Assembly (NCBI RefSeq): GCF_044704955.1
Contig: NW_027254745.1
Coordinates: 124,001-188,000 of the forward strand
Reading direction: 5' to 3'
Source: Pristiophorus japonicus
Taxonomy: Eukaryota
Length of the DNA stretch: 64,000 nt
Shown here: one piece after another, positions 3,200 to 50,532 of the stretch
Layout: every line of letters begins with the position of its first letter
Numbering within the stretch: position 1 is the stretch's first letter
Program-made: the position numbers and the translations under genes
The notes under the pieces: generated by a model
Database searches by the model: none
What the model was told of the DNA's origin: nothing
Seen by the model: the letters and a program-made list of their open reading frames with translations, nothing else

Positions 3200-3241
3200 T
3201 TTGGGCTGAATTCCTGTGGGAGGAAGCATAATTATATTAAT

Positions 3242-6200
3242 TCAGCACCGTTTAGTCAATTTACCCTTGTCAACAGATGGAGGAACATCTTGACCGGTCA
3301 GGAGCACCCAATAAGTGTTTCGTTCTCCTTTCACTAAGATTTCCCCTGCTTGTAAGTGTTTCTGGGGGTACTGCACCCACACTTTTCCTCCTTCACAAAC
3401 TGTGTCCTGAGTCTGATTTTCTTTTTCAATAGTAGGGACACTAACTTTGCCTAACATGTGGCTTATGGGAGTTTCCCCCCACAATGGTCGGTGATTCAGA
3501 TTGCGCACTGCTTGTGGGAAAATCTTTAACCACCCTTGCAATGTGTTAGTGGGAGTTAATATTTTAATCTGTTGTTTAAGTAATCCATTCATGCGTTCCA
3601 TTAAACCTGCAGCTTGCGGATAGTAATGTATGTGAAACATCCAATAGATCTCGTTATCTACCGCCCACTGTTGCACTGTTTGACCTGTGAAGTGCGACCC
3701 ATTATCGGACTGTACTTCTGCTGGTTCACCGTAGTATGTGATTAAATTCTCCAGTCCTTTAATCGTACTTGGTTGATTCGCTTTAGTCACAGGATAAGCG
3801 ATCAAAAGTATAGAATAGGTATCAACAACAGTGAGCAAATATTGGAACCGTTGTTGCAATGGTAAAGGTCCTACATCATCAACTTGCCATGTTTCTGCTG
3901 GTTGAGTCCCTCTCTTAATTGTCGTTGTAGGGGGAAATGCTTCACCTTTTGACAAATTTCACAGGTGTTTATGATCTGATTAACACCGTCCGTAGTCAAA
4001 TGTAACCCCCCATTTCGTGCCCACTGTATCGTACCCTGAATGCCCAAATGTCCAGATTTGTGGTGGGCCCACTTGCCTATGCCATATTCTTCCTCTTCCG
4101 CCTCTTTGACAGCCCGTACCCGGGCTATATTATCAACTGTGTTATTATATTCAGAAGTCTTTGAAGTGTTTTTCATGTGGGTGTCCACATGATATACAGT
4201 TATTTTCATCTTCTGGGATTTGGAACATATTTGTTCCCATAGGTACTTTCCCCACAAGTCTTTCCCAGTTATTTGCCAGTTATGTTCATGCCAGTTTCGC
4301 ATTCAGCCCGCCATGCCATTGGCTACTGCCCATGAGTCAGTATATATGTGTATTTGTTGCTGTTCCTCTTCTAGCGCAGGGACTACAGCTGCTAGTTCTG
4401 CTTGCTGGCTGGAGTCTCCCACGCCCTCATCATGCACAATTGTCTGTTTTTTTGGATTGAAGGCAGCGGCTCGCCATCACCGAAGGCCATTTCGCCAGAC
4501 CGCTGAGCCACCTGTGAACCAGGCATGGCTACGTTCTTCGGGTGTTAACTGTTCAAAAGACACATCCCAGGAGATCGGTGACTCTTTGGTTAAACTGACA
4601 GACGACTGCGTAAGTTCACTCTCAGCTGTTTGTGGGTATCCAGCCACATGCTCATGTAGTCGGGTGATTCCTTCTTTCCCTTTACTTGCTCTGTCTGCGA
4701 TATACCATTTCGAGCGCACTATGCACTCGCCCGACCTTGTGTGTCTCATTTTCTGAGAGAACCCAGGATAATATGGGTAGGTCTTGTCTTAAACTGACTT
4801 TGTCGTCCCCTGTCTGTCCTTCTGTTTCTGTTAGGGCCCAATAACATGCTAATAATTGTTTCTCAAATGGAGTGTAACGAGCAGCAGCATCTGTCAATGT
4901 TCTAGACCATAACCCTAACGATATACGAGTGCCATGTTGAGCCTGCCACAAACTTCATACTGCAGTATCATTGATAACGGATACCTGGAGCTCAAAAGGC
5001 TGTCCAGGCACTCGTGGGGCTAGGGGTAAAGCTTGAGCTACGGCTTCTTTGGCTGCATCAAAAGCCACCTGTTGTTCCTTTCCCCACTCGAAGTGGGCCT
5101 TTTTTCGAGTTGCGGCATACAACGATTTTAATAGCAACGTGAGTTGAGGTATGTGTCTCCTCCAGTAACCCAATAGTCCCACGAACCGTTGTGTCTCAGT
5201 TTTATTCGTGGAGGTGGCCATTTCTTTAATTTTATTCCTCACAGGCTCGGGTATGATGCGCTCACCGCGAGACCATTGGATCCCCAGAAACTGGACAAAC
5301 TGGCTAGGGCCCTGCACCTTCTTCGGATTTATCTCCAAGCCCAGATCTCGCATGTGTTGGACTAAAGTAGCTAGGGCTTCTGACACCACATCCTCGGTGG
5401 GACCCCTTATTCGTACATCATCGATATAGTGTGCCAGTGAGATATTAGGAGCCAACGTGCACATGTCCAGGTCCCGGGCCACCAATCCATGGCATAGGGT
5501 AGGGCTATGTAGGTAACCTTGAGGTAGGCGTTTAAACGTGTATTGCCTCCCTTCCCAAGTGAGTGCAAACTGGTGCTGTGATTCTTCCGCTATTAGATTG
5601 GCGAAACTGGCATTGGCCAGGTCGGTTACCGCATACCACTCCGCACCTTCTTCAGACAGCCGCTCTGTTATAGTTACTACATTGGGACAGCGGTTGCCAG
5701 GAGAGGGGCACATTTGTTCAGTTGTCGGTAATCCACAGTCATCCTCCAACTTTTGTCGGGTTTCTGCACACGCCAAACAGGGCTTTTGTAGGGGACACCA
5801 CATGTCTAATGATTCCCGCCTCCAAGAGACCTTGTATGGTTTCCCCTATTTCTTTGTGTCCCCCAGGTATTTGGTACTGTTTCATAGTCACTATACGCAA
5901 TGGCCGTGGTATTACCACTGGTTCCCACTTTGCTTCCTCTGCAATCTCAATGATCGCCCATATCCCGAATGAGAATCGCCCGAACGAGATGTTGTGTGTG
6001 GTTCCCTTTAAAAGGTCCATCCCAATAATATGTTCCTTTACTGCCGATATTAAGACCGTTACGCAGCGCGGAGGCCCATTTCCCAACGCCATTCTGATAG
6101 TTGTTCGGACAGCGGGCGTTTCTGCCCCCCACCCCCGAACCCATTAATCATCATACAGGTCCCTGTGTGTTTCCTAGGGTTTCCATGGATAATAGTAACT

Positions 6201-6300
6201 TCTGCCCCTGTGTCTAGTAAAGCAACATCTCTTTGTATGTTCGCCCCCACCCCGCCAATGTATCGTAATCGGAATGTGTGGCCTCAGATCCCGGGAGCTT
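3242..6300 (-). pseudogene. pol: ERV pro-pol (protease, RT, tether/RNase H, integrase), frameshifted
   Basis: LLDTGAEVT (6059-6250), RT YIDD (4955-5803), RNase H WFTGGSA (~4500), integrase HHCC (AHHKSGH...CEIC) and core (3242-3955). Confidence 0.9.
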
Positions 6301-6447
6301 GGGTTGATGTGGTTCTAATGGGGAGTACTCCCGGATCCCGGCCACACCCCAGTCGAGGGGATTACTAGCCTTCCACAGCTCTTCTACGCTGGGATATAGG
6401 CTAGTGGGAGATGGTTTCTCCGCATCCGCAGACTTGACGTTATCCGA

Positions 6448-7946
6448 CTAAGTCTCCCTTACCTCCCTCCTTTTACCCTTCCCTGTTCCCGGGACGCAGT
6501 GTTGCTTCCACATAGAATACATTGCTCCTGTTGGGATTGCATCAATTTTTTTTCCTTGGGGACCCCTGCTTTCAATAAAGACGCGTACATGTCCCTCTGC
6601 GCAATTCTTTTTTTTTGTCTTTCCTGACCCTATATCTTTCCCAGAGGTCGAACCTTGTCGCTGGTCCCGATCCCCCTCTACATTAGCCGTTCTCGACTCT
6701 CGCACACTATCTTCTACATCGTCTAACTGTCCTAACAACAGGAGAGCGTCCCCTACCCGCTGCTCTTGGGCTGGTCCCAATAATGCACGTAGCGCACCCC
6801 TCATCATAGGAGGGCCACTCTTCATCAGCCTGCTCTGCATTCCTGCCGTAAAGAGCTCCTGATCTGGCCCCCCATATTGTTGGTGATATATTCCTCCCTG
6901 TGTTTCCATGTTGTGCAATTGTATCGCACCCTCCACCACAGTACTCCAAGGTTTTAACTCCCCTTTCCAATCAACGGCAGAGGGATATTTTTCCTGGACC
7001 CCTATAGTAACCATGTCCCATAGCGAACTTGTGCCCTGGACATTTCGTAGCACTGCTGTGATATGGTGGTCCGTAATCATAGTCCTCATTTTTATTAACT
7101 CTTCAGGGTTAAGTATTACGCCTGATGCTCCCTGATCCCAAATCCGGGTTAGCCATTCTGACAATGATTCCTCGGGTTTTTTGCGAAATCGAGACCCTAT
7201 TTCTTGTAACTCACAAGTGGTGAAGTCACGCACCCCTCTAGTGGTTACTGGCTGTTTCCCATCTTGCTGTTTCACCTTATTTGTCATAAGGGGTCTAGCT
7301 TTCTTGCTCGGAGCGTATGGGGGAGGGTTTTTAGTTTCCTCCCGTTCCCCCCTCTCCATCTGACCATTCATATTCTGAGTCAGAGGAGTACCAGATGTCT
7401 CCTTCCCAATGAGCCGGATCCCAAGTGGGTCCAGCTACCAATGCACGTACCTTTGACCGATCTATCTGTAATTTCCGTCGTCTGGCTTTTTAATAATGTT
7501 GTACTGTCACCAGATGGCATATTAAAGTTTCTGATTGTTCATTGAGCTTGTCCACCTGTTGTTGTGCAGTGTGGACCGCTTCAGTCAGAGTCGAGTTTTG
7601 ACTTTCGAAAAACCTTAACAGCTGTTTTTAACTCTAGGTTTTCTGCCTCACTTTCCTTAAGTTGTTTACACATCGTCTTTAATGCTGTCAACAAAATTCA
7701 TCCCATTTGTGAGGGATTACTTTTCTCCTGTGGGAAGCCGACTTCCTCCAGGAGAGACAGTACCGCGTGGGGTACGGGTCTATCTTTGCTCTGTTCCAAT
7801 AACTGCATATCCCAATGTTGTGGGGATGCAAACTGGGCTAGCACATTGGCAAGAGAGCCAAAACCCTCATCCCTCATGCTCCACCCTGGTATTCTATACT
7901 TCTCTCCCGCAGGAGGAGACTGCTCCTTGTCTTTTCTCTTAAACAT
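6448..7946 (-). pseudogene. gag: ERV gag, frameshifted
   Basis: ATG at 7946 just after the PBS. 307-aa fragment with a PPPY late-domain-like motif and ESLSEWLTRIWDQGA capsid-like motif. Confidence 0.8.
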
Positions 7947-8740: not shown

Positions 8741-8907
8741 ACCTTTTTCCATGATTGGATCCTTTGGAGGATAAGCCACAGCCTGAGGTTTCACTCGAAT
8801 GTATAACTGAAACCACCCATCCCAACGTCTCACTGACTTTGCAAATTGTAACTTGATCCACTTTGACTTCCTGAAACAACAGAGGCAGAACTCCCAGAAG
8901 ACAGCGA

Positions 8908-9720
8908 CTGCAAGCCAAAGTGCCTTGCTCCAGTCGCAGTGCATCCCTCCCCAGCGGAAGTGCCTTACTCCAGTCCTAGTAAATGCCTCCCCAGCCAAAG
9001 TGCCTTAACCCGATCCAGTGCATGCATCCCAGTGCCAAAGTGCCTTACCGCAGACCCAGTGCATGCCTCCCCCAGCAAAAGTGCCTTACCCCAGTCCCAG
9101 TATATGCCTCCCAGAGGCGAAGTGCCTTACCCCAGTATATGCCTCCCCCAGCCAAAGTGCCTTACCCCAGTCGCAGTACACGCCTCCCCCAGCCAACGTG
9201 CCTTACCCCAGTCCCAGTGGAAGTCTCCTCCAGCCGAAGTGCCTTACCCCACTCTGAGTGCATGCCTCCACCAGACGAAGTGACTTATCCCAGTCCCAGT
9301 GCAGGCTTCCCCCAGCTGGAGTGCTTTATACCAGTCCCAGTGCATGCCTCCCCCAGCCGAAGTGCCTTACCCCAGTCCCAGTATATGCATCCCCCAGCCA
9401 AAGTGCCTTACCCCAATCCCAGTGCATGCATCTCCCAGCCGAAGTGCCTTACCTCATTCCAAGTGCATGCCCCCAACCCAGCTAAAGTGCCTTACCCCAG
9501 TCCCAGTGCATGCCTCCCCCAGCCCAAGTCCCTTACCCCAGTCCCAGTGCACGCCTCCCCCAGCTGAAGTGCCTTAGCCAGTCCAAGTGTATGCCTCCCC
9601 CAGCCGAAGTGCCTTACCCTAGTTCCAGTGCAAGCCTCCCCCATCCAAAGTGCATTACTGCAGTCCGACTGCCTTACCCCAGTCCCAGTGCACGCCTCCC
9701 CCAGCCCAAGTGCCTTAACC
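8908..9720. repeat. 41-bp minisatellite, about 20 copies
   Basis: Unit GTGCCTTACCCCAGTCCCAGTGCATGCCTCCCCCAGCCAAA. It explains the Pro-rich ORFs in all three frames. Confidence 0.95.
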
Positions 9721-9829
9721 GAGTTTTATTTCTCTGCACCACATGCATGGAATGATTCGTGCCCGGATGGTGCGGGGCTTGTCGCCTGTCAGTCACAAAG
9801 TGCAGAATCAATCGATTCCTGCGTTAATA

Positions 9830-12115: not shown

Positions 12116-12243
12116 CTTCACCAGAGTGACGGCAGTGCTGTAGGAAATGCTCAGGAAGAACAGGATGATGAATGTGGAAGCGGTTGTCCAGATGTTGCCG
12201 CTCTCGTCCTCATAGTCTTCATTCCAGATGTGGTCTGAGGAAT
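12116..12243 (-). CDS. IGHM: IgM transmembrane exon TM1
   Basis: cccgtag|AT..AAG|gtgaga. Encodes (D)[42 protein letters not shown] with the conserved membrane-Ig motif. Phase matches the internal Cmu4 donor at 15005. Confidence 0.95.
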
Positions 12244-12929: not shown

Positions 12930-13155
12930 CAGTGTTTGTGTTTCCCTGTGAGCGTGTTGATCTGTGAGGTTGTGCGTGTGTGTATTTGTAAGATTGTGTA
13001 TGTGTGTGTAAATCTTTGTTTATGTTTTGTTTAAGAATGCATGTAAGTGTGTGTTTTTATATTTAATTGCGAGTGTGCGATTTGGTGTAGGTGAGTGTGT
13101 GTACTTTTATGTGTAAGCATCTTCATATCTAAGGGTTTGTGTGTGTCTGTGTGTG

Positions 13156-13189
<34 letters not shown>

Positions 13190-13990
13190 AAGTGTGTTCA
13201 TGTGTGTGCTTATGTGTATGTGTATCCTTGTGTATATGTATGTTCATGTGTGTGTTTCCCTACAAGTGTATGTGTATGGTTATTTATAAGTGTTTGTTTT
13301 TGTTGAGGTGTAAGTGTGTGTGTGAGATTTCGTGTAACATTGTGTATACCTGTAAGTTTGTGTGTGTGTGTTTTGTGTTAGTTTGTGTTTGGATTTATAT
13401 GCGTGTTCATGCTTGTGTAAGTCTGTTCAGTTGTGTGTTTTTCTGTAAGTGTATGGCTATGTATCAGTGTTGTTCATGTTTAGGTTTAAGCGTGTGTGTG
13501 TTTATGTGTAACAATGGGTTTGCAGGTAAATTTGTGTGTGTGTGTTTTGTGAAAGTGTGTGTTTTGATTGATGTATGTGTCTAAGTGCAATAGTATGTTT
13601 GCATGTAAGTGTGTGTGTGTTTAGTTTAAATGTGTGTTTGGATTGATGCGTTTGTTTACGAGTGTGTGTGTGTTTTGTGTAAGTGTGTGTGTGGATTGAT
13701 GTGTATTTATGTGTGTGTAAGTGTGTTTTGTGTAAGTGTGTGTGTGGATTGATGTATGCATTTATGTGTGTATAAGTGGTGTTTTGTAAGTGTAAGTGTA
13801 TGGATTGGTGCGTATGTCTATGTGTGTGAAAGTGTGTTTTGTGTAAGTGTGTGTGTGGATTGATGTATGTGTTTATGTGTGTGTAGGTGTGCTTTGTGTC
13901 AGTGTCTGTGTGGATTGATGTGTGTGTCTATGTGTGTGTAAGTGTGTGTAAGTATCCGTTGTGTAAGTGTGCGTTTAGATTGACGTGTAT
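12930..13990. repeat. Degenerate (TG)n-rich tract with higher-order ~56-bp units
   Basis: GT-rich low-complexity sequence in the Cmu4-TM1 intron, with recurring GTGGATTGATGT..GTAAGTGTG. Confidence 0.9.
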
Positions 13991-14942: not shown

Positions 14943-15334
14943 TCATTGACAAGAATTTACGGTGTCCATCAGAACAAGGGAAATGTTGACGAAACTGGGT
15001 TTACCGCTGGATTTATTGACGGTTCTGTTGGTGATCTTCAAGGGGATCGCTTCATGTCCCACCACACAGGAGTAAGAAGCGCCGCTGGCCCACTCCTCGG
15101 CTGCAATGGATAGCAGGCTGTACATGAAGAAGGATCTGCTGCCGTTCTCCGCCATCACCTCGGTGTTCTTGTAGTTGCCCGAATCCACCGGCTTGTCATT
15201 GACGGTCCATTTGACGAAGATCTCTCGGGGGGAGAAACCTCTCACTAAGCAGGTGAGGCTGACCAACCCCTGAGCGGAGACTTCTTCTGCCGAGGGCAGG
15301 AGGACAGACACGGCTGGTTCCCGTGGATCTTTCG
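14943..15334 (-). CDS. IGHM: IgM Cmu4 plus secretory tailpiece (internal donor at 15005 for the membrane form)
   Basis: cgacag|CG AAA. Encodes [37 protein letters not shown]|[19 protein letters not shown]. The tail sequon and penultimate Cys are intact. Confidence 0.97.
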
Positions 15335-16232: not shown

Positions 16233-16541
16233 CCTTCTCCTTGTGGATGGATTCTCTGATCGGTGTCGGCATATCCTGATGGCTCACCACGCAGTAGAAC
16301 TTATCCCCACTCAGCCAGTCTTGTGTCGAGATGTTTAAGTTGCTGATCACGCTGTTGGGATCCTCTCCCGGTTGGACGGCAATCTCTGATTTCAAAGCCT
16401 CCTTTTCTCGGGTCCAGGTCACAGTGAGCCCATAAGGAGCGTCTGACACGACGCAGGTTAAGGTCACCGTCGCCTCCAGTAAGATCTGTTCCAGTGATGG
16501 TGAGCGAAGAGTGATTTTTGAATCGCTGCATGGGACATCCA
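16233..16541 (-). CDS. IGHM: IgM Cmu3 exon
   Basis: ttttgcag|TG..AAG G|gtgag, 309 nt. Encodes [40 protein letters not shown]. Confidence 0.96.
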
Positions 16542-18502: not shown

Positions 18503-18820
18503 CCTGAGATCTGCTGAAGTTATGGTTTTGCGTGACCCCTTGATGAGTGACCTGGCAGGTGTAGACCGAGCCGGTTAACCATTCCTCGGCGGGGACTGTC
18601 AGCCGACTGGCTGTCGAGAAGTTCCCGTTCACCTCAAAGACGGGAGAGGTGAGGAAGCCCGAATCCATGAGTTGTCCACTCTTCAGCCAATTCACAGTCA
18701 GTGACTTTGGCCTGAAATCGATGATTGAACACACGGCGCTTGCATATCTGCTGCTGGTGATTTGTTCAGTGGAACTCAGTGTGAGGAGAACAGTTGGAGG
18801 AACGATGTCCCGTTCAGGAT
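18503..18820 (-). CDS. IGHM: IgM Cmu2 exon
   Basis: tctcttgaag|AT CCT..CAG G|gtaag, 318 nt. Encodes [33 protein letters not shown]. Confidence 0.95.
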
Positions 18821-19276: not shown

Positions 19277-19576
19277 CTGGCATTGTGATGGCCCAGACCG
19301 ACACACCACGTCGAACCTCGCAGTTGATTGTGCTGCTCCCCACCTCTGACTCGGTGATGGTTAACTGGCTGCTCTGGGTGTAGATTCCCTTCTTGTTGAG
19401 CACTGGCGGGTAGGTCTTCAATCCAGTGGTGATCGGCTCTTTATCTTTCTTCCAGGAAAGGCTGGTGATGTCGGGGGAATAGTCCATTGCCAAACAGCCG
19501 TACGTGATGGAGCCATCGGTGCTGGGTTGTTCACAGGAGGAGAGCAGGGCGTAGAGGGTGGGGGGAGACGGTGTTA
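19277..19576 (-). CDS. IGHM: IgM Cmu1 exon
   Basis: ttcccag|TA ACA..CCA G|gttagt, 300 nt. Encodes [34 protein letters not shown]. The early extra Cys (likely L-chain link) is retained. Confidence 0.96.
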
Positions 19577-21959: not shown

Positions 21960-22750
21960 CCTTGAACACTGCCTGACCAAGCACTCTCAGGTCAGATATA
22001 GCACGGATAAGAGAGCAAAGCTCCCGCTATGCTGCCGTGTGGGTCAGGGCAGGTATAGCAAGGGTTGCACACAGAGTAATACGTTATCTGTGCTATCCCG
22101 TCAAACATTCCCAGCTGAAGTACTGCAGAGATGTGCTACGAAATGTCTTCCCTTAAAATGCGTTATCAAATTGACCGATTAGATTAAGCACAATTATCAC
22201 AAGTACAAATAAAAGCTTCCGATACACTGATCCATTAAAGCGCACCAGCTCACCTAGAGCTCTGATTAAATAGAAGATCAATCTATATTGAAGGACCCAA
22301 TTAAGCTCCACGTCCTTGTAAATAAAAGGTTAAATACTGATTAAAGCTATCTCTGCAATGTCCCATCAAGCACTGCCATTTAAGGTAAAGCACGGGTTAG
22401 TTGCAGAGTAAAGCTCCCTCTTCACTGTCCCATCAAATACTCCCAAGACAGGTACAGTGTAAAGCTCCCTCTACAGTGTCCCATTAAACATTCTCAGGGC
22501 AGGTACAACATGGGTCAAGATACAGAGTAAAGCTCCATCTACACTGTCCCATCAACACTCCTAGGGCACGTAGAGCATGGGCTAAATACAGAGTAACACT
22601 CCCTCTACACTGTCCCATCAAACACTCCCAGGGCACGTACAGCATGGGCTAGATACAGAGTAAAGCTCCTTCTGCCCTGTCCCATCAAACACTCCCAGGG
22701 CAGGTACTACCGGGTTAGAAACTGATTAAAGCTCCTTCTACTGTCTCCCC
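21960..22750 (+). repeat. ~67-bp shark tandem repeat
   Basis: Unit acactgtcccatcaaacactcccagggcaggtacagcacgggttagatacagagtaaagctccctct. Also at ~10660-10730 (-), 33300-33710, 41620-41875 and 59995-60310. Confidence 0.85.
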
Positions 22751-25029
22751 ATGGTGTTTCGGAACTGCTTCTTCTGGCTATCATAATCTGGATTAACGAT
22801 CTCATTTCTGCGGAGACTCCACAACCTCAAAGTCAATCTTTCACGTTTCTCACCTATGCCAGTTTCTTAAATAACTGAGTTAAATGACACTCCCCGCAAT
22901 ACAGGATCACAATCCAGAAGTTTTACAACCCGTCAGGAGGACTCCTGATTCTCACACAGTGAGCAGGCGCACATAAACAGAACAGACACAAACGGTGCTC
23001 CAGGCAGAGAGACCAGTTCAATCTATTAATTTCAATGAAGTTGTTTGATTTCTAATTTATTTCCTGCCAATTTCCAACCACCGCAAGTCTGCAGATTCTT
23101 TGAAATTAAACTGATATTAATTTGAGAGAAACTTCAACATCCAGCCATTTTTCCATCTCTGTCAACTATCTTGTAAACCGTGTAAAAATTAACTTCCCTG
23201 AAAGTAAGTATCTGGAAATAATTCACATTCCACGGCAATTTGCTGCCCGTCACACGGGACTTGGTGACATATTCAGAATGTCACAATCCAGGGGACATCT
23301 ACATTGAAACCTGATCACCCACTGATTTTATATATTTTCATCAGTAAATATAACCTGTAAAATCATCGAGGCAAAACAAGAAGTTAATTCACTAAAATCT
23401 GCAGCGACACCTTATCAAACTCAGCACAGCCGGGTTATACATGCATTGTTTTGTAAATTAACTTATGAATTAATTAAACATTATCTGCAACCCTTGAGAT
23501 TTTGCAATAATTGTAATACTGACCAGTATGCAACACAATTGTAATGGATCGTTTATGTTTAATGAATTAGCACTGATGTTACTGTCTAAGTTAATGTTCA
23601 TGTTAGCTGATTATTGAAAATAATCTGAGTGCTTATCTGGCTCTTCCTGCTCAGAAGCATACGTACCTGGAACTTTTGAAATTAAATTAACGTTCTTGAA
23701 TTTCTGCCTTACTAATGCAATTAATTAATAATAATATTAAAACCTTTTTCTGCCTGGTAACTTGTGATATATTAAGATTAACTTAACTTACAATAACAAT
23801 TCATGAATATTAAAATATTAAGCAGCATATTAATACATACATTCTCAGAAAAATACCTTATTTTTACTTATATCGAATCAAATTTGAATAATTGACAATA
23901 ATCACGCAGTTCTACCACTGTCCCGCTCTCGACCGACATCTTTTTAAACTCTGCATGTTTCTGATATAGCAAAAACTGAGTCTATTCGCAGAGAACATTT
24001 CACATGATGGATTTAGGGGAGGACTATTTTAAATAGTTCTCTGTCCAGCCGAGGTCACAACTCCGATGGTTGTAAACCGCTTGTTTACTAATACTGGAAT
24101 CTCGAGCTGAAATATTCTCCTCAATCTTAAACCCCAAAAATGGTTTTATTAATTAAAACCCACCCGTGCAGCTTAAAGTCAATAGCAGAGCCTCCGCTGT
24201 TTAATAACACAGACAATCTTTTATAGTTCACTCCCGTTATTCACATAATGCCCACAAATTAATGATTAAATATACTCTGCTACTTCTTGAAAATAGTTTC
24301 CAGAATGGTGAGTGTAAAACTGGAGGATAACAAATCATTCAGACCATATGCGACACTGAAACTGAATGAGGTGAGACTTTGTTCATCAATTTAACATTCA
24401 TAAGAATTAAACATAACTCTCAGATATTATCTGTGCTTTGTCTACCGCTCTATTCCGCATACAGCAGCCTTTTGGGAGATAGGATTTTGTTTTAAATTCA
24501 AAAGAAGATGGACCTTTTGTAAGTAAATTAATCTGCTTGAATTTCAATGGATTATTTGCCTGTCTCCATCCATACACAGTCGGAACCTGCCTTGAATTTA
24601 AATATAATTACATGAATAATTCTTTGACTGCCAGCGACGCCTGTCTCTCAGCTTTTGGTCTTGCAAAGTGTTCAAGATTAATTTAGTAATAATTCTATCA
24701 AACAACACACAATATTGATTCAATAACAATTTTCGGCTGCACAGTGAGAATGTCATACCCCAGCAGATATATTAAATTGACAAAATGCAATTTGCAACAC
24801 GGCTTTAAGTTATAATTAATTGCACTCAGTCATTCATCTGTGTAAACAGGAGGTAGCAAGTAATTGAACTCCCGACTCAAACTGAACACAGCGGTGGAAT
24901 CAGTATGTTATTAATGAAATAATTGCAGGCATAATTAATAACTGTATCCAGCCTCTAAAAGTTTCTGCTTCCTTTAATGGAGCCCAGTGTAGAGCAGGAT
25001 TTTGGAAGGCGAATAATATTAAGTAAATT

Positions 25030-26260
25030 AACATTGGACTTATAGCATATTTTAATAACACTGGGAGATATTATCGCATTATAATCGGTTGGTTAATATT
25101 AATTTAATTCAACTACATCCTGAACACGTTAATTATTCAGATGGCAATTAGTTACATTTCGCACAATAAAATATCAGCATCGTAAACATAAATTAATAGT
25201 TGAATATATAATTATCACTTGTATAATTGTTATATTAAAATACCTTTCAATGATTTCTGATTTCTAAACCCGTCCTGTTCTCTGTCTATAAACTGTTTTC
25301 AAACAGTTTCAAACACATATCGTGTTTGCATTCGAGCAGAAACCTGCTGCTGCCCGCTGACACCCATATTGAACATTGTAGAAACGCCTAGATTCACAAA
25401 TTCTAGGTATTCTGAGTAACACAGGCACATCTCTCCTCAGCAGATCAACACTAAATCACATCACTGAGGGGCGGAATCCCTCGACAGAACCTTTCATGGA
25501 GCAGATCCTTCATTTCATCAACCCTTTCAGCAGAATCAAATGTATCATTGCAAAAAATCTCATTACAAAATCACTGAACCCGCCTAACACTGAAATAACT
25601 AAAGATTGAATTCAACAGAAATATAAAATAATGAGAGCAGAATTGTGATTAGACAGATCATGTTAAATACATTAATGTTGATATTATAGCATATTTAATA
25701 AAACGTGATGATATTGCTACATTATAATAATGTTAATAATATTAATTTAAGTGTGTCCCAGCGTGAAATATGTTAATTTTTCAGTACTTAATTACAGTAA
25801 CAGCTCACGTATTGAATCTGAGAGTTCGGGAACATTCGGTCAGTAGATGACAATCCAATTTTCATTAAAAAACTTAAAATTCCTTAAGATTATTTACTGG
25901 TCGCTAAGCTTTCTGTTTTGTGCCTACAATGTTCTTTTAAACACATTTAAACACAATGTTTGCATTCGATCAGAAAAACTGCAGCAATTAGTGGTCACCA
26001 AAATTAAACATTGCAGAAACATCAAACAGTGTAAAAACCATAATGTATTTAGAGTAACCCAGGCACATGTCTCGTCAGCAAATAAACAGCAAATCACATC
26101 AACAACATTTTCTGTGGAGAAAAAGTTGAATTCTATAATCACTTTGCAGCAGAATCACATTGAAAATTGCAAAAAATCTCAAAACAAAATCCACTGAACC
26201 TAAGTTTCAGTGAACGAAATAATTATTAAAATAAACAGAAATATAAAATAAAGACACAAA
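25030..26260. repeat. Diverged ~620-640-bp tandem duplication in the J-C intron
   Basis: Matching anchors at 25040/25684, 25322/25955, 25414/26052 and 25614/26233. Confidence 0.8.
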
Positions 26261-26294: not shown

Positions 26295-26362
26295 CTGCAG
26301 TCACCGTCACCATGGTCCCTTGTCCCCAGTAGTCCTTGGCAATGTACCCACTCCCGCAGTCC
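26295..26362 (-). CDS. IGHJ: Pre-joined D(D)J segment of IgH
   Basis: Directly after heptamer CACTGTG: G GAC TGC GGG AGT GGG TAC ATT GCC AAG GAC TAC TGG GGA CAA GGG ACC ATG GTG ACG GTG ACT GCA G|gtaagg. No internal RSS. WGQG motif and a phase-1 donor are present. Confidence 0.92.
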
Positions 26363-26390
26363 CACAGTGACAGGAACCCGCACACATACT
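26363..26390 (+). promoter_or_regulatory. 12-bp-spacer RSS 5' of the DJ segment
   Basis: CACAGTG-acaggaacccgc-ACACATACT: perfect heptamer, nonamer 6/9 to ACAAAAACC. Confidence 0.85.
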
Positions 26391-26797
26391 GCACTCACTC
26401 TCTGCTCAGTACTGACTCTCAACATTCACGTCAAATAGACATTCACTTCAAATACTCATTCGCTTCTGATCAAGTTTAGAATTTAGCCAACAGTTTACAT
26501 AGCACAATTGAAAGTGAACACAGTTCTAACCAGCTCCCTGCATGTACCAGGCACAGTGAATCGAGCATCACCTCCAGCTCTGCAATTGCTGACACTGTTA
26601 ACATTAAACAGGAGCATAATCAACACCTCGCCTCTGTACATGGGTTAGTGTGTTAGATTTTCACCATTGAATTCTCAGTGTGTTAGTTTTGTAAGAAGCG
26701 GTTTATGGTCTTGTTCTGTACATTGCCGGTAACATTGCATTTGACACAATTAATGACCATCAGGTTATGATGTAAGTTGTTGAATTCCCCCTCGATC

Positions 26798-26836
26798 TGT
26801 TCTTGTACAGGTCCAGCCCTGGTTCCTCTCGCTGTG
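26798..26836 (-). promoter_or_regulatory. 23-bp-spacer RSS 3' of VH
   Basis: CACAGCG-agaggaaccagggctggacctgt-ACAAGAACA immediately after the YYCARY codons. Confidence 0.93.
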
Positions 26837-27141
26837 GTACCTTGCACAGTAATAGATGGCGGTGTCTTCGCTCTTCAGATTCTTCATGTCCAGCGCGAAG
26901 ATGTTGTTTGAAATGTCTTTGGACGCAGTAAATCGGCTCGCAATCCCTGCGGCGTAATACTTGTTCGATGGACTGTAATACTGAACCAGCCACTCCAGCC
27001 CCTGTCCGGGAATCTGGCGGATCCAGTACATGTAGCTGCCACCAAGATCGAAGCCGCTGGTTTTACAGGTCAGTCTCAGGGAGCTTCCGGGAAACCTGAT
27101 CTCTGCCTCGGGCTGAGTCAACACCACATCCGACTGGACAC
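26837..27141 (-). CDS. IGHV: Unrearranged IgM VH exon (with end of leader)
   Basis: tttttacag|GT GTC CAG TCG. Encodes [46 protein letters not shown], with no stops. Confidence 0.97.
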
Positions 27142-27268
27142 CTGTAAAAATAATCAAAATACCCGAAGATTCAATCCTGGTGAAATGATTCCTGACTCTG
27201 TAACATTCCAGAGAGAGACTAACACTGAGACAGTAACAGTGAGACATTGGACAATAAAAACTACTCAC

Positions 27269-27314
27269 GGGAAAAGAAAGCCAGCAACAGACTGAGAGAA
27301 ATCGCCGACCTCAT
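27269..27314 (-). CDS. IGHV: IgH leader exon
   Basis: ATG 27314, [16 protein letters not shown]|gtgagt, 46 nt, 127-bp intron. Spliced leader [19 protein letters not shown]. Confidence 0.95.
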
Positions 27315-27399
27315 CCTCCTGGCAATGTGTGGTGAATGGTACCGGCAAGAACTCACTGAACAAACCCACTCCCAGACTGTTGTATTGCGGTCCCAGTGA

Positions 27400-27505
27400 C
27401 AGCAGTTAAATACCCGGGAGCTGGGGGCGAGGTTACAGGCGCCGCCCATTGATTCACTGATAGAGGCGGTTTCTGGATTCACATCACACCTTCCACATCA
27501 CCAAC
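27400..27505 (-). promoter_or_regulatory. Putative VH promoter
   Basis: TATTTAA at 27412-27406 and two GTGATGTG motifs (~27480-27501). No ATGCAAAT octamer seen. Confidence 0.5.
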
Positions 27506-29027
27506 AGAATGGACTCACATCTGGACTGTAAATTAAATCCCTTATTTCCTCACTCCTTCAAAGGGGATGTGAATCTCTGAGATTGAATTACATAATCAGG
27601 GTCTAAAGATACTGCCAGTTTGTGTTTCTCCATCTCCCGCTATCTATCCATGCATCTGTACCAATAAAGTATCCCCTATAATCTGAATTGTTATCACTCT
27701 ATGTAACCGAGTGCGGGAGATGGGTAATGTGATTCTATTTACGGTGTACTTGGCTAAAGCTACACACTTTTGGTCTGGAGATGAGATCATACTCCTCACA
27801 TTACACAATAGTCTCTCATTGCATTTCACTAACTGCCCCTGAGTCTGTGACCCGACGACAGCCGTTTGTAAAATTAGCTGTCAAATAAGTCCGCTTGACT
27901 GATGATTAAGGAGTGAGTTGACGGAGACACATAAGAAAGTGGGTCCCTCCCGCTTCAGACCTGCGTTTTATGAGAGAAGCTTGTGAATCAGAACCGATAA
28001 TGTGATCAGCAAACCTCGATATCCAAATCCTTGCAGCTAACTTTAATAGCGACCGACTGTGTAACAGACACGGGTAACAGGAACACGGTGTATCAGGACA
28101 TAACGATATGTTACAGAATTTCACAGGAATAAATGCTTCATCTCCAGCAGCAACAGATCACAATCTGGGCATTTCACCACCCAATGGTAGCCTGGCTATG
28201 AGAGGGGTTGTTCAGGAACCCAAATCAGATCAAATTATACCGCACACTGCGCGGCTACTAATCAGGAATAATGGAGACATGAGGTTAGACCTGGCTCTAA
28301 ATTCTGTGATAATATTAAAGAAGTGCAGCTGGCACTTCTCTGTGAGAATATTCAAGGCAATTCAACCTGTTTTAGTTACTTTGCGAATCCCACTCATCTC
28401 ATCATAGTGTGGGGTGAGGCCATTAAACCTCTCTCCAAAACTTCATCCTGTACTGAATAAAGGGACTGAATGGTCCAGAATGGTATTTATTTGGAAATAG
28501 TTTTCATTAGATACCGTGTTGATCAATTCATTATTTTCCGATCCTATTTTTAATATGGTGAACAAGGAATTTACGGAAAATCATTCTTGTGATGTTATAC
28601 CATGTAAAATGTTTCTTATTTTAAAAGTTCGACTGAATAATTTCATGTTCAAGTAGTTAAATACCATCTTTCTCCCATTCTTGTTCACGCTATTCTGACC
28701 GACACAATATTTGGCAGTAACCCAACCGACTGCCTTCAGCGAGCCTCGAACACCAGTGTCATTTACAGGAAGCATTTGGGATTCTTTGCAGTCCATCAAA
28801 GGTCTGTTTTCTCACTGCTGACCGCATGCCTGGAAGCCAACTTCAAAACCTTTACATTGTCAAAAGACCTATTAATATACACATCTACCCAGTAATGGTA
28901 CTGGAGTTAAATTTAATTTTTTCGTTGTGTAAATGTGTGGAACTGTTCCCATATCCCAGGAAAAGAAATATATCCAATGCCTCAGACACCATGTCAAAAG
29001 CAGCAGTCAGCTGGAGTATCAGTACCG

Positions 29028-41345: not shown

Positions 41346-43036
41346 CTATGTCCCAGTATCAGTAATTACTGCACGAGCCAATACCTCAGTTATTACTGCA
41401 CTAGAAACACTAATATTATACTAGGCCTTGTTTCAGAAATTACTGGAGTATGCCATGCCATTGTTCCTAACTGAAGACCCTGTCTCTGCTTGCAGTAAAT
41501 TAGACAATGACACTCTTTACATTACACTAGCTCCATTCTTTCATATTAATAAACTAGACCATGCCTCTGTTTATATTAGACTAGACCCTGTCTAAGATAT
41601 TACTGCACTAATCTATGTAAATCACAGGGCAGGTACAGCATGTGTCAGATACAGAGTAATGCTCCCTCTACAGCATTCCATCAATAAGTCCCAGGGCAGG
41701 TACAGCACGGGTTAGGTACAGAGTAAAGCTGTCTCTACACAGTCCCATTAAACACGCCCAGAGTTGGTAGAGCACGGGTTAGATACAGTGTAAAGATCCC
41801 TCTACATAGTCCCATCAAAAACTGCCAGATCATTAAATGCACATATCACATTTTGGATTAAAGCTCCCTCTGCGCATTCTGATCAATTTGGTTCGAGGCA
41901 TATCATTAGGGTTCAAGAAAAAGGTTTGTTAGATGTTGACATCAAGTTGTGGGGGAAAGCCAATTATCCATTCTTGAGAGACAAGACGGAAAGTGGAAAT
42001 AGGAGAGAGAGAGGATACGGGAAATCTCCACTGTCACATTTGTGATGCCACTATGTACGGTGATTAGAATCTTCCCCATTCTGTCCGTGGGGATCATCTT
42101 TACCTTATTCTCCTATAATTTAGAGAAATGTACCAAAAAACAATTGTTGCTGGAATCTGTTGAGAGATTTGCATTTTTCTCTATCTTTATTTCTGTGCTG
42201 TGTTGGTGGGGAATCATTTATTGTCTTTCTGTCGCTCAATACTCTAATCTGAGACTGCTATTTCCGTCCTTATTTACATAAACGTCTTACTGGTTCCCAT
42301 GAAATGTTCATGGCAGCAAAATAAGATAAATACACTCACTTATTGATTCTTTTCAACTCACAACAAGGGCTTATTTTAAGAATATTGACAGTTGGTACAC
42401 AGATATATACATATCTCGAACAGTGACTTTGGCTTCAGTTTTTGTTCAATTAGAACAGGTGTGATTTATATCTAACGGAATAAATTTTAAAATGAATAAT
42501 TCAGTTCTGAAAGTTCTGCTGCCATACTCAGTGTAACATCTCTGAACAGGCGGCTATTCCACTGGATCTCCATTTAGTGGAATATTTAATCTATTGAAAC
42601 TTAATACGTTAAACCAGTGAGCAGAGGAGTGTCAGACAATCAGAGTAATATCTGAGTTTTTCACATATCACAAATTGTATTTTCCAATGTTGACATTTCG
42701 AAACACCTTGCATTTGTATAGCACCTTTCATGACCTCAAGTTGTCCCAAAGTCCTTAAAAGCCAATGAATTATTTCGGAAATGTGGTCACGGTTGTAATT
42801 TAGGAAACGTGGCAGCCAATTTGTGCACAGCAAGATCCCATAAACAGCAATGAAATAATGATCAGATAATCAATTTTTCAGATGTTGGTTGATGGATACA
42901 TGTTTCCCTTGGAAACTCTGGAGAACTCCTCTGCTCTTTAAGATAGTGCCATGAATCCTTTAAATCCACCTGAGTGGTAAAACGGGGCCTCAGTTTAATG
43001 TCTGCCCCAAAAGACAGCACCTCTAATCGTGCAGCA

Positions 43037-45912
43037 TAGAAAGATAGAAAGATAAAAGCATAGAAAATAGGTGCAGGAGTAGGCCATTCGGCCCTTCGAG
43101 CCTGCAACACCATTCAACGAGTTCATGGCTGAACATGCAACTACAGTACCCCATTCCTGCTTTCTCGCCATACCCCTTGATACCCCTAATAGTAAGGACT
43201 ACATCTAACTCCTTTTTGAATATATTTACTGAATTGGCCTCAACAACTTTCTGTGGTAGAGAATTCCACAGGTTGACCACTCTCTGGGTGAAGAAGTTTC
43301 TCCTCATCTCGGTCCTAAATGGCTTACCCCTTATCTTTAGACTGTGACCCCTGGTTCTGGACTTTTCCAACATTGGGAACATTCTTCCTGCATCTAACCT
43401 GTCGAAACCCATCAGAATTTTAAAAGTTTCCATGAGATCCCCCCCTCATTCATCTGAACTCCAGTGAATACAAGCCCAGTTGATCCACTCTTTCTTGATA
43501 GGTCAGTCCCACCATCCCAGGAATCAGTCTGGTGAACATTCGCTCCACTCCCTCAATAGCAAGAATGTCCTTCCTCAAGTTAGGAGACCAAAACTGTACA
43601 CAATACTCCAGGTGTGGCCTCACCAAGGCCCTGTACAACTGTAGCAACTGCCCCAGTACTCAAATCCCCTCGCTATGAAGGCCAACATGCCATTTGCTTT
43701 CTTAACCGCCTGCTGTACCTGCATGCCAACCTTCAATGACTGATGTACCATGACACCCAGGTCTCGTTACACCTCCCCTTTTCCTAATCTGTCAACATTC
43801 AGATAATAGTCTGTCTCTCTGTTTTTACCACCAAAGTGGATAACCTCACATTTATCCATATTATACTTCATCTGCCATGTATTTGCCCACTCACCTAACC
43901 TATCCAAGTCCCTCTGCAGTCTCATGGCATCCTCCTCGCAACTCACACTGCCACCCAACTTAGTGACATCCGCAAATTTGGAGATACTTCATTTAATCCC
44001 CTCGTCCAAATCATTAATGTGCAATGTAAACAGCTGGGACCCCAGCACAGAACCTTGCGGTACCCCACTAGTCACTGCCTGCCATTCTGAAAAGTACCCA
44101 TTTACTCCTACTCTTTGCTTCCTGTCTGACAAGCAGTTCTCAATCCATGTCAGCACACTACCCCCAATCCCATGTGCTTTAACTTTGCACATTAATCTCT
44201 TGTGTGGGACCTTGTCGAAAGCCTTCTGAAAGTCGAAATATACCACATCAACTGGTTCTCCCTCGTCCACTCTACTGGAAACATCCTCAAAAAATTCGAG
44301 AAGATTTGTCAAGCATGATTTCCCTTTCATAAATCCATGCCAACTTGGACCTATCATGTCACCTATTTCCACATGCGCTGCTATGACATCCTTAATAATT
44401 TATTCCATCATTTTACCCACTACTGAGGTCAGGCTGACCGGTCTATAATTCCCTGTTTTCTCTCTCCCTCCTTTTTTAAAAAGTGGGGTTACATTGGCTA
44501 CACTCCACTCGATAGGAACTGATCCAGAGTCTATGGAATGTTGGTAAATGACTGTCAATGCATCCGCTATTTCCAAGGCCACCGTCGTAGGTCCTCTGGG
44601 ATGCAGTCCATCAGGCCCTGGGATTTATCGGCCTTCAATCCCATCAATTTCCCCAACACAATTTCCCGACTAATAAGGATTTCCCTCGTTTCCTCCTTCT
44701 TACTAGACCCTCTGACCCCTTTTATATCCGGAAGGTTGTCTGTGTCCTCCTTAGTGAATACCGAACCAAAGTACATATTCAATTGGTCTGCCATTTCTTT
44801 GTTCCCCGTTATGACCTCCTCTGATTCTGACTGCAGGGGACCTACGTTTGTCTTTACTAATCTTTTTCTCTTTACATATCTATAGAAACTTTTGTAGTCC
44901 GTCATAATGTTCACTGCAAGCTTCCTTTCGTACTCTATTTTCCCTGCCCTAATCAAATCCTTTGTCCTCCTCTGCTGAGTTCTAAATTTCTCCCAGTCCC
45001 CAGGTTCACTGCTATTTCTGGCCAATTTGTATGCCACTTCCTTGGCTTTAATATTATCCCTGATTTCCCTGATAGCCACGGTTCATCAACCTTCCCTTTT
45101 TTATTTTTACACCAGACAGGGATGTACAATTGTCGTAGTTCATCCATGCGGTCTCTAAATGTCTGCCATTGTCCATCCACAGTCTACCCCTTAAGTATTA
45201 TTCGCAAATCCATCCTAGCCAATTCACCCTCATATCTTCAAAGTTACCCTTCTTTAAGTCCTGGACCATGGTCTCTGAATTAATTGTTTCATTCTCCATC
45301 CTAACGTAGAGTTCCATCATATTATGGTCACTCTTCCCCAAGGGGCTTCGCACAACGAGATTGCTAATTAATCCTCTCTCATTACATAAGACCCAGTCTA
45401 AGATGGCCTCCCCCCCTAGTTGGTTCCTCGACATATTGCTCTCGAAAACCATCCATTATGCACTCCAGGAAATCCTTCTCCACCGTATTGCTTCCAGTTT
45501 GGTTAGCCCAATCTATATGCACATTAAAGTCACCCATGATAAATGCTGCACCTTTATTGCATGCACCCCTAATTTCCTGTTTGATGCGTTCCCCAACATC
45601 ACTGCTACTGTTTGGAGGTCTGTACACAACTCGCACTAACGTTTTTTGCCCTTTGATGTTCTGCAGCTCTACCCATATATATTCCACATCATCCAAGCTG
45701 ATGTCCTTCCTAACTATTGCATTAATCTCCTCTTTAACCAGCAATGCTACCCCAGCTCCTTTTCCTTTTATTCTTTCCTTCCTGAATGTTGAATACCCAT
45801 GGATGTTGAGTTCCCAGCCCTGATCATCCTGGAGCCACGTCTCCGTAATCACAATCATATCATATCCGTTAACATCTATTTCCACACAGTTAATTCATCC
45901 ACCTTATTCATC
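43037..45912 (-). mobile_element. 5'-truncated CR1 LINE (ORF2 pseudogene), copy 1
   Basis: APE endonuclease (VITETW, MGDFN) and RT ([28 protein letters not shown]), 3' (TCTA/TTTC)n tail, frameshifts. Confidence 0.95.
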
Positions 45913-47663
45913 CTGCACTGCCACAGTACTGGGACCAGGCGTGTCGGTTTCGATTATCAGCTCAGCTCTCTCGAGCGGGGTTTAGTATCTGTGACCTTCT
46001 GAATCAGAGGCGAGAGTGATCCCACTGAGCCGAATCTTGAACATATCACAGCTTGTATTTTAAAATGCTGCTATTCAGCTCATCATGTCTGAAGTCCAGG
46101 GTCTGAGCCCAGTCTTACACCGCTCCATTTATCATCAGGAGCGAGTTATCTAATATTGCCTGAGATATCATTACCACACTGTGATTTTCACTGTGTTCAT
46201 ATAAAAGTGTCAGTGATTCCACAGGGAACATCTCGAAGTGCCCCAGGCAGAACGACTCACAGACTTAAGAGATTTATATTGTGTGAGCTGGATAATCAGA
46301 GCATCTGGAAGCTGGGACTGTTCTCCTCAGAGCCGAGCAAGTTATGGGCCATTTAATAGAGGTATTCAAAATCAGGAAAAGTTTTGATCGGGTAAATTGG
46401 GAGATAATTCATCATTCCCTCTGACCACCCGCCTCTCCTTCTCTCCATTCCTTCATCACTCCATTTCTCTATCCCCCTCGCCCTCCATACCTGCCTCCAT
46501 CAATCGCTCCCTCCTTGGACACACCTCTCCCTCCCTCCGTCCGCACTCCACCCATCCAATACACTACACCTCCCTTGCTCCACTCCTCCATTCCTCCATC
46601 GCTCCCTCCATCAATCGCTCACTCCGTGCACCCATCCCTACCTCCGTCTCAGTTTATATTAAACTCGACCATGTCTCTGTTTATATTACACTAGGCACTG
46701 CATCAGTTATTCCTGCCATAGACCATGGCTGAAATATATTATATAAATGCCTGTCTCTCTTCATATTACATTAGATCTTGTCTAAACTATTAGTGCGCTG
46801 GACGCTGTCTGTATTTCTTATACTATCGACCCTGCTCAGTTATTTCAGCACTTGCACATGCGTCTGTTACATAGGCAGGAGATATAGAGAGGGTTTGACA
46901 GATATTAATATAAATAAAGATGTATATATGTGTGGGTGTGAGGATGCAATACTTTTTTGTTTGGAAGTATATGCTTAGATTTGTTAACAGCTATCAGCAC
47001 GTGTGTGCAATCTCTAATCGATCTGTTATTATGACGGTAATAATTGTGTTGAAAGGATGAGTGAATCTTGTAACAATCTTCCAGTAATGGACTGGGATTG
47101 AGGGACAGGACGGAAGGTGAGCAATTCACTGCACTTTGAACTACTGGCAAAATCTGTGGGTTTGAGGTTACTAATTCACACTTGTGTTGTCCTGTGCCTA
47201 TTTCTCCAAGTTCTTTAACGTTAAGGGTTGTTTTTCATCCAGTATTTGACGTGACCCACTGATTATGTAGGACAGAGCCTGGAACCGTGATCTCAGAGCA
47301 CCGCCGGATGGGCGGCCACAGTGTCCTAATATCGACCAGAAAATATGTTCTCACCTTGTGAAATGAACAACTGAAAAGAGAACACAAAAGTGTTTGGTAT
47401 ATGTTTATGTGTGTTNNNNNNNNNNNNNNNNNNNNNNNNNNNNNNNNNNNNNNNNNNNNNNNNNNNNNNNNNNNNNNNNNNNNNNNNNNNNNNNNNNNNN
47501 NNNNNNNNNNNNNNNNNNNNNNNNNNNNNNNNNNNNNNNNNNNNNNNNNNNAATGTCTGCAAGTGCACTCCACAAAGACAAATGATTAGCTTCAGCCAAT
47601 ATTTTTCAGCATTTTACTTCATTCAAAATGCAATTGCAGGTCATTTAATAGCTTTAACATTTA

Positions 47664-50532
47664 AGATAGAAAGATAGAAGCATAGAAAATAGGTGCAGGA
47701 GTAGGCCATTCGGCCCTTCGAGTCTGCAACACCATTCAATGAGTTCATGGCTGAACATGCAACTACAGTACCCCATTCCTGCATTCTCGCCATACCCCTT
47801 GATACCCCTAATAGTAAGGAATACATCTAACACCTTTTTGAATATATTTACTGAATTGGCCTCAACAACTTTCTGTGGTAGAGAATTCCACAGGTTGACC
47901 ACTCTCTGGGTGAAGAAGTTTCTCCTCATCTCGGTCCTAAATGGCTTACCCCTTATCCTTAGACTGTGACCCCTGGTTCTGGACTTTTCCAACATTGGGA
48001 ACATTCTTCCTGCATCTAACCTGTCGAAACCCATCACAATTTTAAAAGTTTCCATGAGATCCCCCCCTCATTCATCTGAACTCCAGTGAATACAAGCCCA
48101 GTTTATCCACTCTTTCTTGATAGGTCAGTCCCACCATCCCAGGTATCAGTCTGGTGAACATTCGCTCCACTCCCTCAATAGCAAGAATGTCCTTCCTCAA
48201 GTTAGGAGACCAAAACTGTACACAATACTCCAGGTGTGGCCTCACCAAGGCCCTGTACAACTGTAGCAACTGCCCCAGTACAGAAATCCCCTCGCTATGA
48301 AGGCCAACATGCCATTTGCTTTCTTAACCGCCTGCTGTACCTGCATGCCAACCTTCAATGACTGATGTACCATGACACCCAGGTCTCGTTACACCTCCCC
48401 TTTTCTTAATCTGTCAACATTCAGATAATAGTCTGTCTCTCTGTTTTTACCACCAAAGTGGATAACCTCACATTTATCCATATTATACTTCATCTGCCAT
48501 GTATTTGCCCACTCACCGAACCTATCCAAGTCCCTCTGCAGTCTCATGGCATCCTCCTCGCAACTCACACTGCCACCCAACTTAGTGACATCCGCAAATT
48601 TGGAGATACTTCATTTAATCCCCTCGTCCAAATCATTAATGTACAATGTAAACAGCTGGGACCCCAGCACAGAACCTTGTGGTACCCCACTAGTCACTGC
48701 CTGCCATTCTGAAAAGTACCCATTTACTCCTACTCTTTGCTTCCTGTCTGACAACCAGTTCTCAATCCATGTCAGCACACTACCCCCAATCCCATGTGCT
48801 TTAACTTTGCACATTAATCTCTTGTGTGGGACCTTGTCGAAAGCCTTCTGAAAGTCGAAATATACCACATCAACTGGTTCTCCCTCGTCCACTCAACTGG
48901 AAACATCCTCAAAAAATTCGAGAAGATTTGTCAAGCATGATTTCCCTTTGATAAATCCATGCCAACTTGGACCTAACATGTCACCTATTTCCACATGCGC
49001 TGCTATGACATCCTTAATAATTTATTCCATCATTTTACCCACTACTGAGGTCAGGCTGACCGGTCTATAATTCCCTGTTTTCTCTCTCCCTCCTTTTTTA
49101 AAAAGTGGGGTTACATTGGCTACACTCCACTCGATAGGAACTGATCCAGAATCTATGGAATGTTGGTAAATGACTGTCAATGCATCCGCTATTTCCAAGG
49201 CCACCGTCGTAGGTCCTCTGGGATGCAGTCCATCAGGCCCTGGGATTTATCGGCCTTCAATCCCATCAATTTCCCCAACACAATTTCCCGACTAATAAGG
49301 ATTTCCCTCGTTTCCTCCTTCTTACTAGACCCTCTGACCCCTTTTATATCCGGAAGGTTGTTTGTGTCCTCCTTAGTGAATACCGAACCAAAGTACATAT
49401 TCAATTGGTCTGCCATTTCTTTGTTCCCCGTTATGACCTCCCCTGATTCTGACTGCAGGGGACCTACGTTTGTCTTTACTAATCTTTTTCTCTTTACATA
49501 TCTATAGCAACGTTTGTAGTCCGTCATAATGTTCCCTGCAAGCTTCCTTTCGTACTCTATTTTCCCTGCCCTAATCAAATCCTTTGTCCTCCTCTGCTGA
49601 GTTCTAAATTTCTCCCAGTCCCCAGGTTCACTGCTATTTCTGGCCAATTTGTATGCCACTTCCTTGGCTTTAATACTATCCCTGATTTCCCTGATAGCCA
49701 CGGTTCATCAACCTTCCCTTTTTTATTTTTACACCAGACAGGGATGTACAATTGTCGTAGTACATCCATGCGGTCTCTAAATGTCTGCCATTGCCCATCT
49801 ACAGTCTACCCCTTAAGTATTATTCGCAAATCCATCCTAGCCAATTCACCCTCATACCTTCAAAGTTACCCTTCTTTAAGTCCTGGACCATGGACTCTGA
49901 ATTAATTGTTTCATTCTCCTACCTAACGTAGAGTTCCATCATATTATGGTCACTCTTCCCCAAGGGGCTTCGCACAACGAGATTGCTAATTAATCCTCTC
50001 TCATTACACAACACCCAGTCTAAGATGGCCTCCCCCCCTAGTTGGTTCCTCGACATCTTGCTCTCGAAAACCATCCATTATGCACTCCAGGAAATCCTTC
50101 TCCACCGTATTGCTTCCAGTTTGGTTAGCCCAATCTATATGCATATTAAAGTCACCCATGATAAATGCTGCACCTTTATTGCATGCACCCCTAATTTCCT
50201 GTTTGATGCGTTCCCCAACATCACTGCTACTGTTTGGAGGTCTGTACACAACTCGCACTAACGTTTTTTGCCCTTTGATGTTCTGCAGCTCTACCCATAT
50301 ATATTCCACATCATCCAAGCTGATGTCCTTCCTAACTATTGAATTAATCTCCTATTTAACCAGCAATGCTACCCCAGCTCCTTTTCCTTTTATTCTTTCC
50401 TTCCTGAATGTTGAATAGCCATGGATGTTGAGCTCCCAGCCCTGATCATCCTGGAGCCACGTCTCCGTAATCACAATCATATCATATCCGTTAACATCTA
50501 TTTGCACAGTTAATTCATCCACCTTATTCATC
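47664..50532 (-). mobile_element. CR1 LINE copy 2
   Basis: Near-identical to copy 1, with the same lesions. Confidence 0.95.

Follow-up and report, generated by a model that had tools for sequence, protein, structure and literature searches.

The IgM cluster analysed here raises the question of how many joining steps are left to the somatic cell. A V segment with its own signal stands upstream of a D-like segment and a J that lie directly next to each other. The answer depends on which recombination signals remain in the cluster, on whether they are used, and on whether the D-J join is inherited DNA.

Anatomy of the cluster and its remaining signals

The whole IgM cluster is located on the minus strand of the window (the entire 64-kb stretch of DNA that was analysed), from 27314 to 12116, and comprises the leader, VH, DJ, four Cmu exons, the secretory tail and TM1. 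All parts are co-oriented and lie within approximately 15-20 kb, as is typical of an IgM minilocus of cartilaginous fish. The V side of the cluster contains the following features.

27406-27412, minus strand: TATA-like box TATTTAA, approximately 95 bp 5' of the ATG
27269-27314, minus strand: leader exon of 46 nt, followed by a GT..AG intron (splice 27268-27142 seen in an RNA contig)
26837-27141, minus strand: VH exon of 305 nt, open (frame check, Pfam V-set), ending ..TGTGCAAGGTAC (YYCARY)
26798-26836, minus strand: V 23-RSS, composed of CACAGCG (26836-26830), a 23-nt spacer and the nonamer ACAAGAACA (26806-26798), abutting the V coding end
26391-26797, minus strand: V-D intervening sequence, without a further RSS-flanked segment and absent from the RNA contig

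The leader and V together form 117 open codons that end in ..YYCARY. The VH exon matches the Pfam V-set domain (E = 8e-15). Its best relative is HV01 of Heterodontus francisci, with 74% protein identity and an identical leader start, and further relatives are the shark VH of Chiloscyllium and Scyliorhinus (67-72%). The octamer ATGCAAAT, with up to one mismatch allowed, was not found upstream of the leader within approximately 700 bp (27315-28020).

The coding start of the DJ is 474 bp from the V coding end. The DJ side is composed as follows.

26363-26390, minus strand: 12-RSS of the D 5' side, composed of the nonamer AGTATGTGT, a 12-nt spacer and the heptamer CACTGTG (26369-26363)
26346-26362, minus strand: D1-like segment GGACTGCGGGAGTGGGT, 17 nt, with both ends as in the D1 of sister clusters
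26335-26345, minus strand: 11 junction bases, ACATTGCCAAG, between the D1-like segment and the J core
26295-26334, minus strand: J core, GACTACTGGGGACAAGGG..GTGACTGCAG, followed by a GT donor

The heptamer of the 12-RSS is perfect, and its nonamer fits at only 6/9 positions. An open D-J unit of 68 nt (26362-26295, minus strand) abuts this signal and ends at the GT donor. It starts with 28 nt directly after the heptamer, which are followed by the J, GACTACTGGGGACAAGGG...GCAG/gtaagg. Translated in the J frame, the unit reads DCGSGYIAKDYWGQGTMVTVTA without a stop. A sister J of the same species also lacks YF codons upstream. The part of the CDR3 that is fixed by the DJ contains a lone Cys, and its codon is one base away from a Tyr codon of the sister D.

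Compared with the contigs of sister clusters, the D1-like segment is untrimmed at both ends. For the junction bases, three origins are conceivable: P/N addition, what is left of a D2, or the beginning of a (D2)J unit. The first two of them, AC, are palindromic to the D1 end and may be P bases; as a sister J unit begins AC.GC.A.GG.CTACTGG, they may just as well open a (D2)J unit. The fusion may contain one or two D segments, that is, D(D)J.

The two remaining signals satisfy the 12/23 rule, the V carrying a 23-RSS and the DJ a 12-RSS. In the 13.5-kb cluster, each RSS class (V-type 23 and DJ-type 12) was found once when both strands were scored, and each signal abuts a coding end. Sequence shuffles gave an expectation of 0.035 sites for the V signal class and 0.025 for the DJ signal class, against one observed for each. 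In the entire window, there is a single WGQG J motif, TGGGGNCARGGNAC. Weaker RSS-like sites (26682, 22955, 20187, 25942 and others) were rejected, as none of them adjoins J or D coding sequence. The possibility of a second J within the J-Cmu intron was likewise dismissed, the WGQG motif being single in the window.

These results agree with the layout proposed in the earlier note, which had described a V with an intact 23-RSS, a single 12-RSS about 470 bp further on, and 28 nt of D-like or junctional sequence fused to the J. The same note had seen no further RSS-flanked D or J on the way from V to Cmu1; RSS scoring and the single J motif lead to the same statement.

The J-Cmu intron also contains repeated sequence. 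At 22200-22740, there are seven copies of a unit of approximately 67 bp with a heptamer-like CACTGTC and no nonamer at RSS spacing. Degenerate direct repeats of approximately 620-645 bp occupy 25010-26255 and begin just past the J donor, and the second copy has no J-like remnant.

The constant region consists of the following exons, and a Pfam C1-set domain was found in each of the four Cmu exons.

19277-19576, minus strand: Cmu1 exon, phase 1, AG/GT, no stop
18503-18820, minus strand: Cmu2 exon, phase 1, AG/GT, no stop
16233-16541, minus strand: Cmu3 exon, phase 1, AG/GT, no stop
14943-15334, minus strand: Cmu4 exon, phase 1, AG/GT, no internal stop, ending in a typical secretory tail and stop; the donor within the exon that serves the membrane form lies after 15005
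12116-12243, minus strand: TM1 exon, intact, AG/GT

Between Cmu4 and TM1, a long TG/CA-rich microsatellite is located at 13100-13930.

We believe that an IgM minilocus with an ancestral germline V(D)J-type join of the D segment(s) and J is the best explanation of this anatomy, and we regard it as likely. The V(D)J-type recombination that joined the D segment(s) to J would have taken place in an ancestor's germ line. After this join, the V would have retained its 23-RSS, and the fused DJ would have retained only the D 5' 12-RSS. Completion of the gene would fall to the developing lymphocyte: RAG would bring the 23-RSS of V together with the 12-RSS of DJ, and a single deletion of the 474-bp spacer would give a complete VDJ exon with one coding joint. 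The VDJ would be transcribed from the V promoter, and the J would be spliced to Cmu1-4 in the secreted or the membrane form. Diversity would arise from trimming and additions at the one joint and from later hypermutation. With the D frame tied to the J, the C-terminal part of the CDR3 would be fixed as (D)CGSGYIAKDY, and productive joints would read ..(D)CGSGYIAKDYWGQG.

Use of the last RSS pair and probable function of the cluster

Transcripts in which the V is joined to this DJ had been named by the earlier note as the evidence to look for. Such a joint was found in an RNA contig of 396 nt (run X23, sample S15), which was obtained from a different sample of the species. The contig begins with the leader, from which the leader intron is exactly spliced out, and continues with the V up to 26836, TCC (sense), and the DJ from 26361 to 26303 at 59/59 nt. 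The joint skips 26362-26835. At this joint, the DJ loses one base, three bases are inserted, and ACATTGCCAAG is included. The RNA contig joins a V of this family to the exact DJ, which indicates that the last RSS pair is used.

The V of the RNA contig differs from the V of this cluster at 19/303 positions, five of which equal paralog variants of the DNA run. It may come from a sister cluster with an identical DJ, or it may result from a template switch in the conserved FR3 end. On either reading, the DJ predates the joining of the V and occurs beyond one molecule.

The V-DJ junction in this single RNA contig is out of frame. The expectation of rearranged transcripts was borne out for the V-to-DJ joint, and an in-frame joint was not found in the one contig obtained. 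A single out-of-frame contig says little, because approximately two-thirds of random joints are out of frame. In-frame clonotypes of this DJ would carry ..GSGYIAKDYWGQG.

The cluster is probably functional. Over 15 kb, no coding exon or splice site is damaged, the secretory tail and TM1 are intact, and the J frame runs through the DJ without a stop. These findings speak against the reading that the join is germline and the cluster a decaying relic, which would still be cut and joined but would yield little or no heavy chain. This reading fits the out-of-frame state of the sole junction seen, the missing upstream octamer, the 6/9 nonamer of the 12-RSS and the lone Cys within the fixed part of the CDR3. 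The germline-joined H genes of the horned shark were also not found expressed (Lee 2000). However, one non-productive contig is weak support for a relic given the share of random joints that fall out of frame anyway, and we consider this reading rather unlikely. If the germline join is granted, the balance tips slightly towards a copy that yields heavy chains.

Origin of the D-J join

In the public sequencing runs, the stretch was matched under one species label only. Runs X22 and X24 of this species yielded no contig here, which does not count against its presence in them. A short-read DNA contig (run X3, whose DNA is perhaps from the very animal used for the assembly) covers 26305-26415 with 0 mismatches and includes most of the J, the D, the 12-RSS and a further 25 nt. 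It has a depth of 44.9, compared with 33-51 for the contigs of the unique V-D spacer and the V exon. None of the loose ends among the DNA contigs of this run suggests an allele in which D and J are unjoined. An exact DNA contig at flank depth excludes assembly collapse and makes a rare lymphocyte clone unlikely. The earlier note had named RSS-containing spacers between D and J as a sign of assembly collapse or of a somatic clone; the short-read contig is contiguous there, at the depth of its flanks.

Sister clusters show which signals have disappeared. In a sister DNA contig (loose end near 26840), a V end is fused to ..GGACTACGGGAGTGGGT, which is followed by the heptamer CACGGTG; this contig is a germline VD-joined sibling cluster. 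Its D core, ..GAGTGGGT and then CACGGTG, matches the 17-nt D of the DJ at 16/17 positions and has kept the 3' signal. In a sister RNA contig (loose end near 26332), the J unit is preceded by its own CACTGTG. This RNA runs through a J signal that has not been rearranged: it is a transcript of another cluster, either sterile or unspliced. The siblings keep the D 3' heptamer (D1 followed by CACGGTG) and the J 5' heptamer (CACTGTG followed by J). In the present cluster, D1 and J are contiguous and the facing RSSs are gone, so these signals were lost here.

The same sister sequences bear on a second alternative, in which nothing was ever joined and the 68 nt are a long J that carries a 12-RSS, the cluster having been D-less from the start. 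In favour of this, the beginning of the sister J unit that is preceded by its own heptamer resembles 26345-26329. However, the first 17 nt of the unit match (16/17) a segment that in the sister is fused to V and followed by CACGGTG, and such a segment is a D. A paralogous DNA contig (26358-26481, 6 differing letters) moreover agrees with this cluster in the region of the 12-RSS and in its first coding bases. We consider a D-less origin very unlikely.

V-DDJ is a common intermediate in the lymphocytes and thymocytes of sharks (Malecek 2008, PMC2435157), but a mismatch-free short-read contig that spans J-D-RSS at flank depth, together with the identical DJ junction in the RNA of another sample, makes it extremely improbable that the DJ arose somatically in a lymphocyte clone or through assembly collapse.

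Inheritance of the DJ is inferred from the contig depth and from the RNA of the second sample. The proposal that the 3' joins were fixed in the germline and the V was left free is in line with the depth of the DNA contig, the signals of the sister clusters and the RNA joint of the second sample, and we hold a germline D(D)J join with a free V to be likely. The maker of the join would be RAG in germ cells, productive heavy chains would be made, and the cluster may have a role in the early repertoire.

Relation to known joined clusters and surroundings in the window

Germline-joined heavy-chain clusters of the VD-J, VDD-J, VD1-D2J (VD-DJ) and VDJ forms have been named (Lewis and Wu 2000; PMC5192425). 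Partly germline-joined IgM clusters are described for the horned shark and the little skate (Kokubu 1988 and reviews by Litman, as given by Lewis and Wu 2000 and PMC5192425). The joined Ig genes of sharks have been attributed to RAG-type joining in germ cells (Lee 2000; Lewis and Wu 2000). The present cluster is of the same type as those of the horned shark and skate: RSS pairs and the intervening DNA are lost, and a single 12/23 pair remains. Their VD-DJ form already includes a D2-J join made in the germline. In all forms of the horned shark and skate, however, the V is fused to a D, whereas here the V is free, the 3' joins are done and the V-to-DJ step remains.

V-DDJ is also known as a somatic intermediate in the IgM genes of the nurse shark, where it is prominent in Group 5 (Malecek 2008, PMC2435157). 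As in that intermediate, a V with a 23-RSS faces a fused unit with the D1 12-RSS, and one step is left. The nurse shark V-DDJ is found in individual lymphocytes or thymocytes, whereas the DJ described here lies in assembled genomic DNA, is present at flank depth, and has its junction repeated in a second sample.

Like IgM1gj and the fully joined VDJ and VJ genes of sharks (PMC5192425; Lee 2000), the cluster would be a product of germline recombination with predetermined CDR3 content. A role in early life has been proposed for germline-joined genes of the IgM1gj type. Genes of this type need no RAG step, whereas the present cluster would need one step and keep one diversifying junction.

In needing just one V-to-(D)J deletion, with a 23-RSS paired to a 12-RSS, the cluster resembles the V-J clusters of shark light chains and the DJ of mammalian pro-B cells. 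The present cluster differs from the former in being a heavy-chain cluster with four Cmu exons, and from the mammalian case in that the DJ of mammals is somatic. In IgNAR type III genes, D1 and D2 are germline-fused, the V is free and the J is separate. Internal segments are thus germline-fused next to a free V in both cases, but IgNAR is another isotype, and more than one join is still needed there.

None of the reviews, commentaries and full-text searches consulted yielded a named germline cluster of the V-DJ or V-DDJ kind, although primary cluster papers may mention one. The comparison suggests that this cluster is a germline-joined configuration of shark IgM not listed so far, which extends the known habit of germline rearrangement. 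In the catalogued heavy-chain forms, the V is always fused first, and a form with a free V and a fused D-J would fill the missing class. Germ-line joining would then not be confined to the V side, and a heavy-chain gene could exist that needs only one somatic join. The accepted mechanism is unchanged, and no new principle is required.

We tentatively suggest, as a possibility on the weaker side, that the genome carries an expanded and expressed V-DJ subfamily of IgM, that is, heavy-chain genes completed in one step, whose distal CDR3 is hard-wired. If true, this would provide a natural test of whether fewer joins bias the choice of clusters in shark B cells, and when in life. V-DJ clusters would also open the questions of how the number of joins relates to the speed of assembly, to heavy-chain exclusion and to the early-life repertoire, whether one junction is sufficient for diversity, and how joined forms spread by cluster duplication.

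Outside the IgM cluster, the window contains several repeated elements. Retroelement remains with long open frames are located downstream of the cluster on the minus strand (3200-7450), and integrase-like (3245-3958), RT/RNase H-like (4958-5845) and gag-like (6451-7434) pieces can be distinguished in them. From 43000 to 57000, there are three tandem units of approximately 4.62 kb, which start near 43026, 47657 and 52251. Each unit contains ORF fragments of a LINE-like endonuclease and reverse transcriptase on the minus strand, and a run of N is found at the equivalent place in each (47416-47551, 52037-52176 and 56670-56797). A proline/serine-rich tandem repeat (..PSPSACLPQPKCLTPVPVHASPS..) at 8860-9760 is open in several plus-strand frames and is probably a minisatellite rather than a gene.
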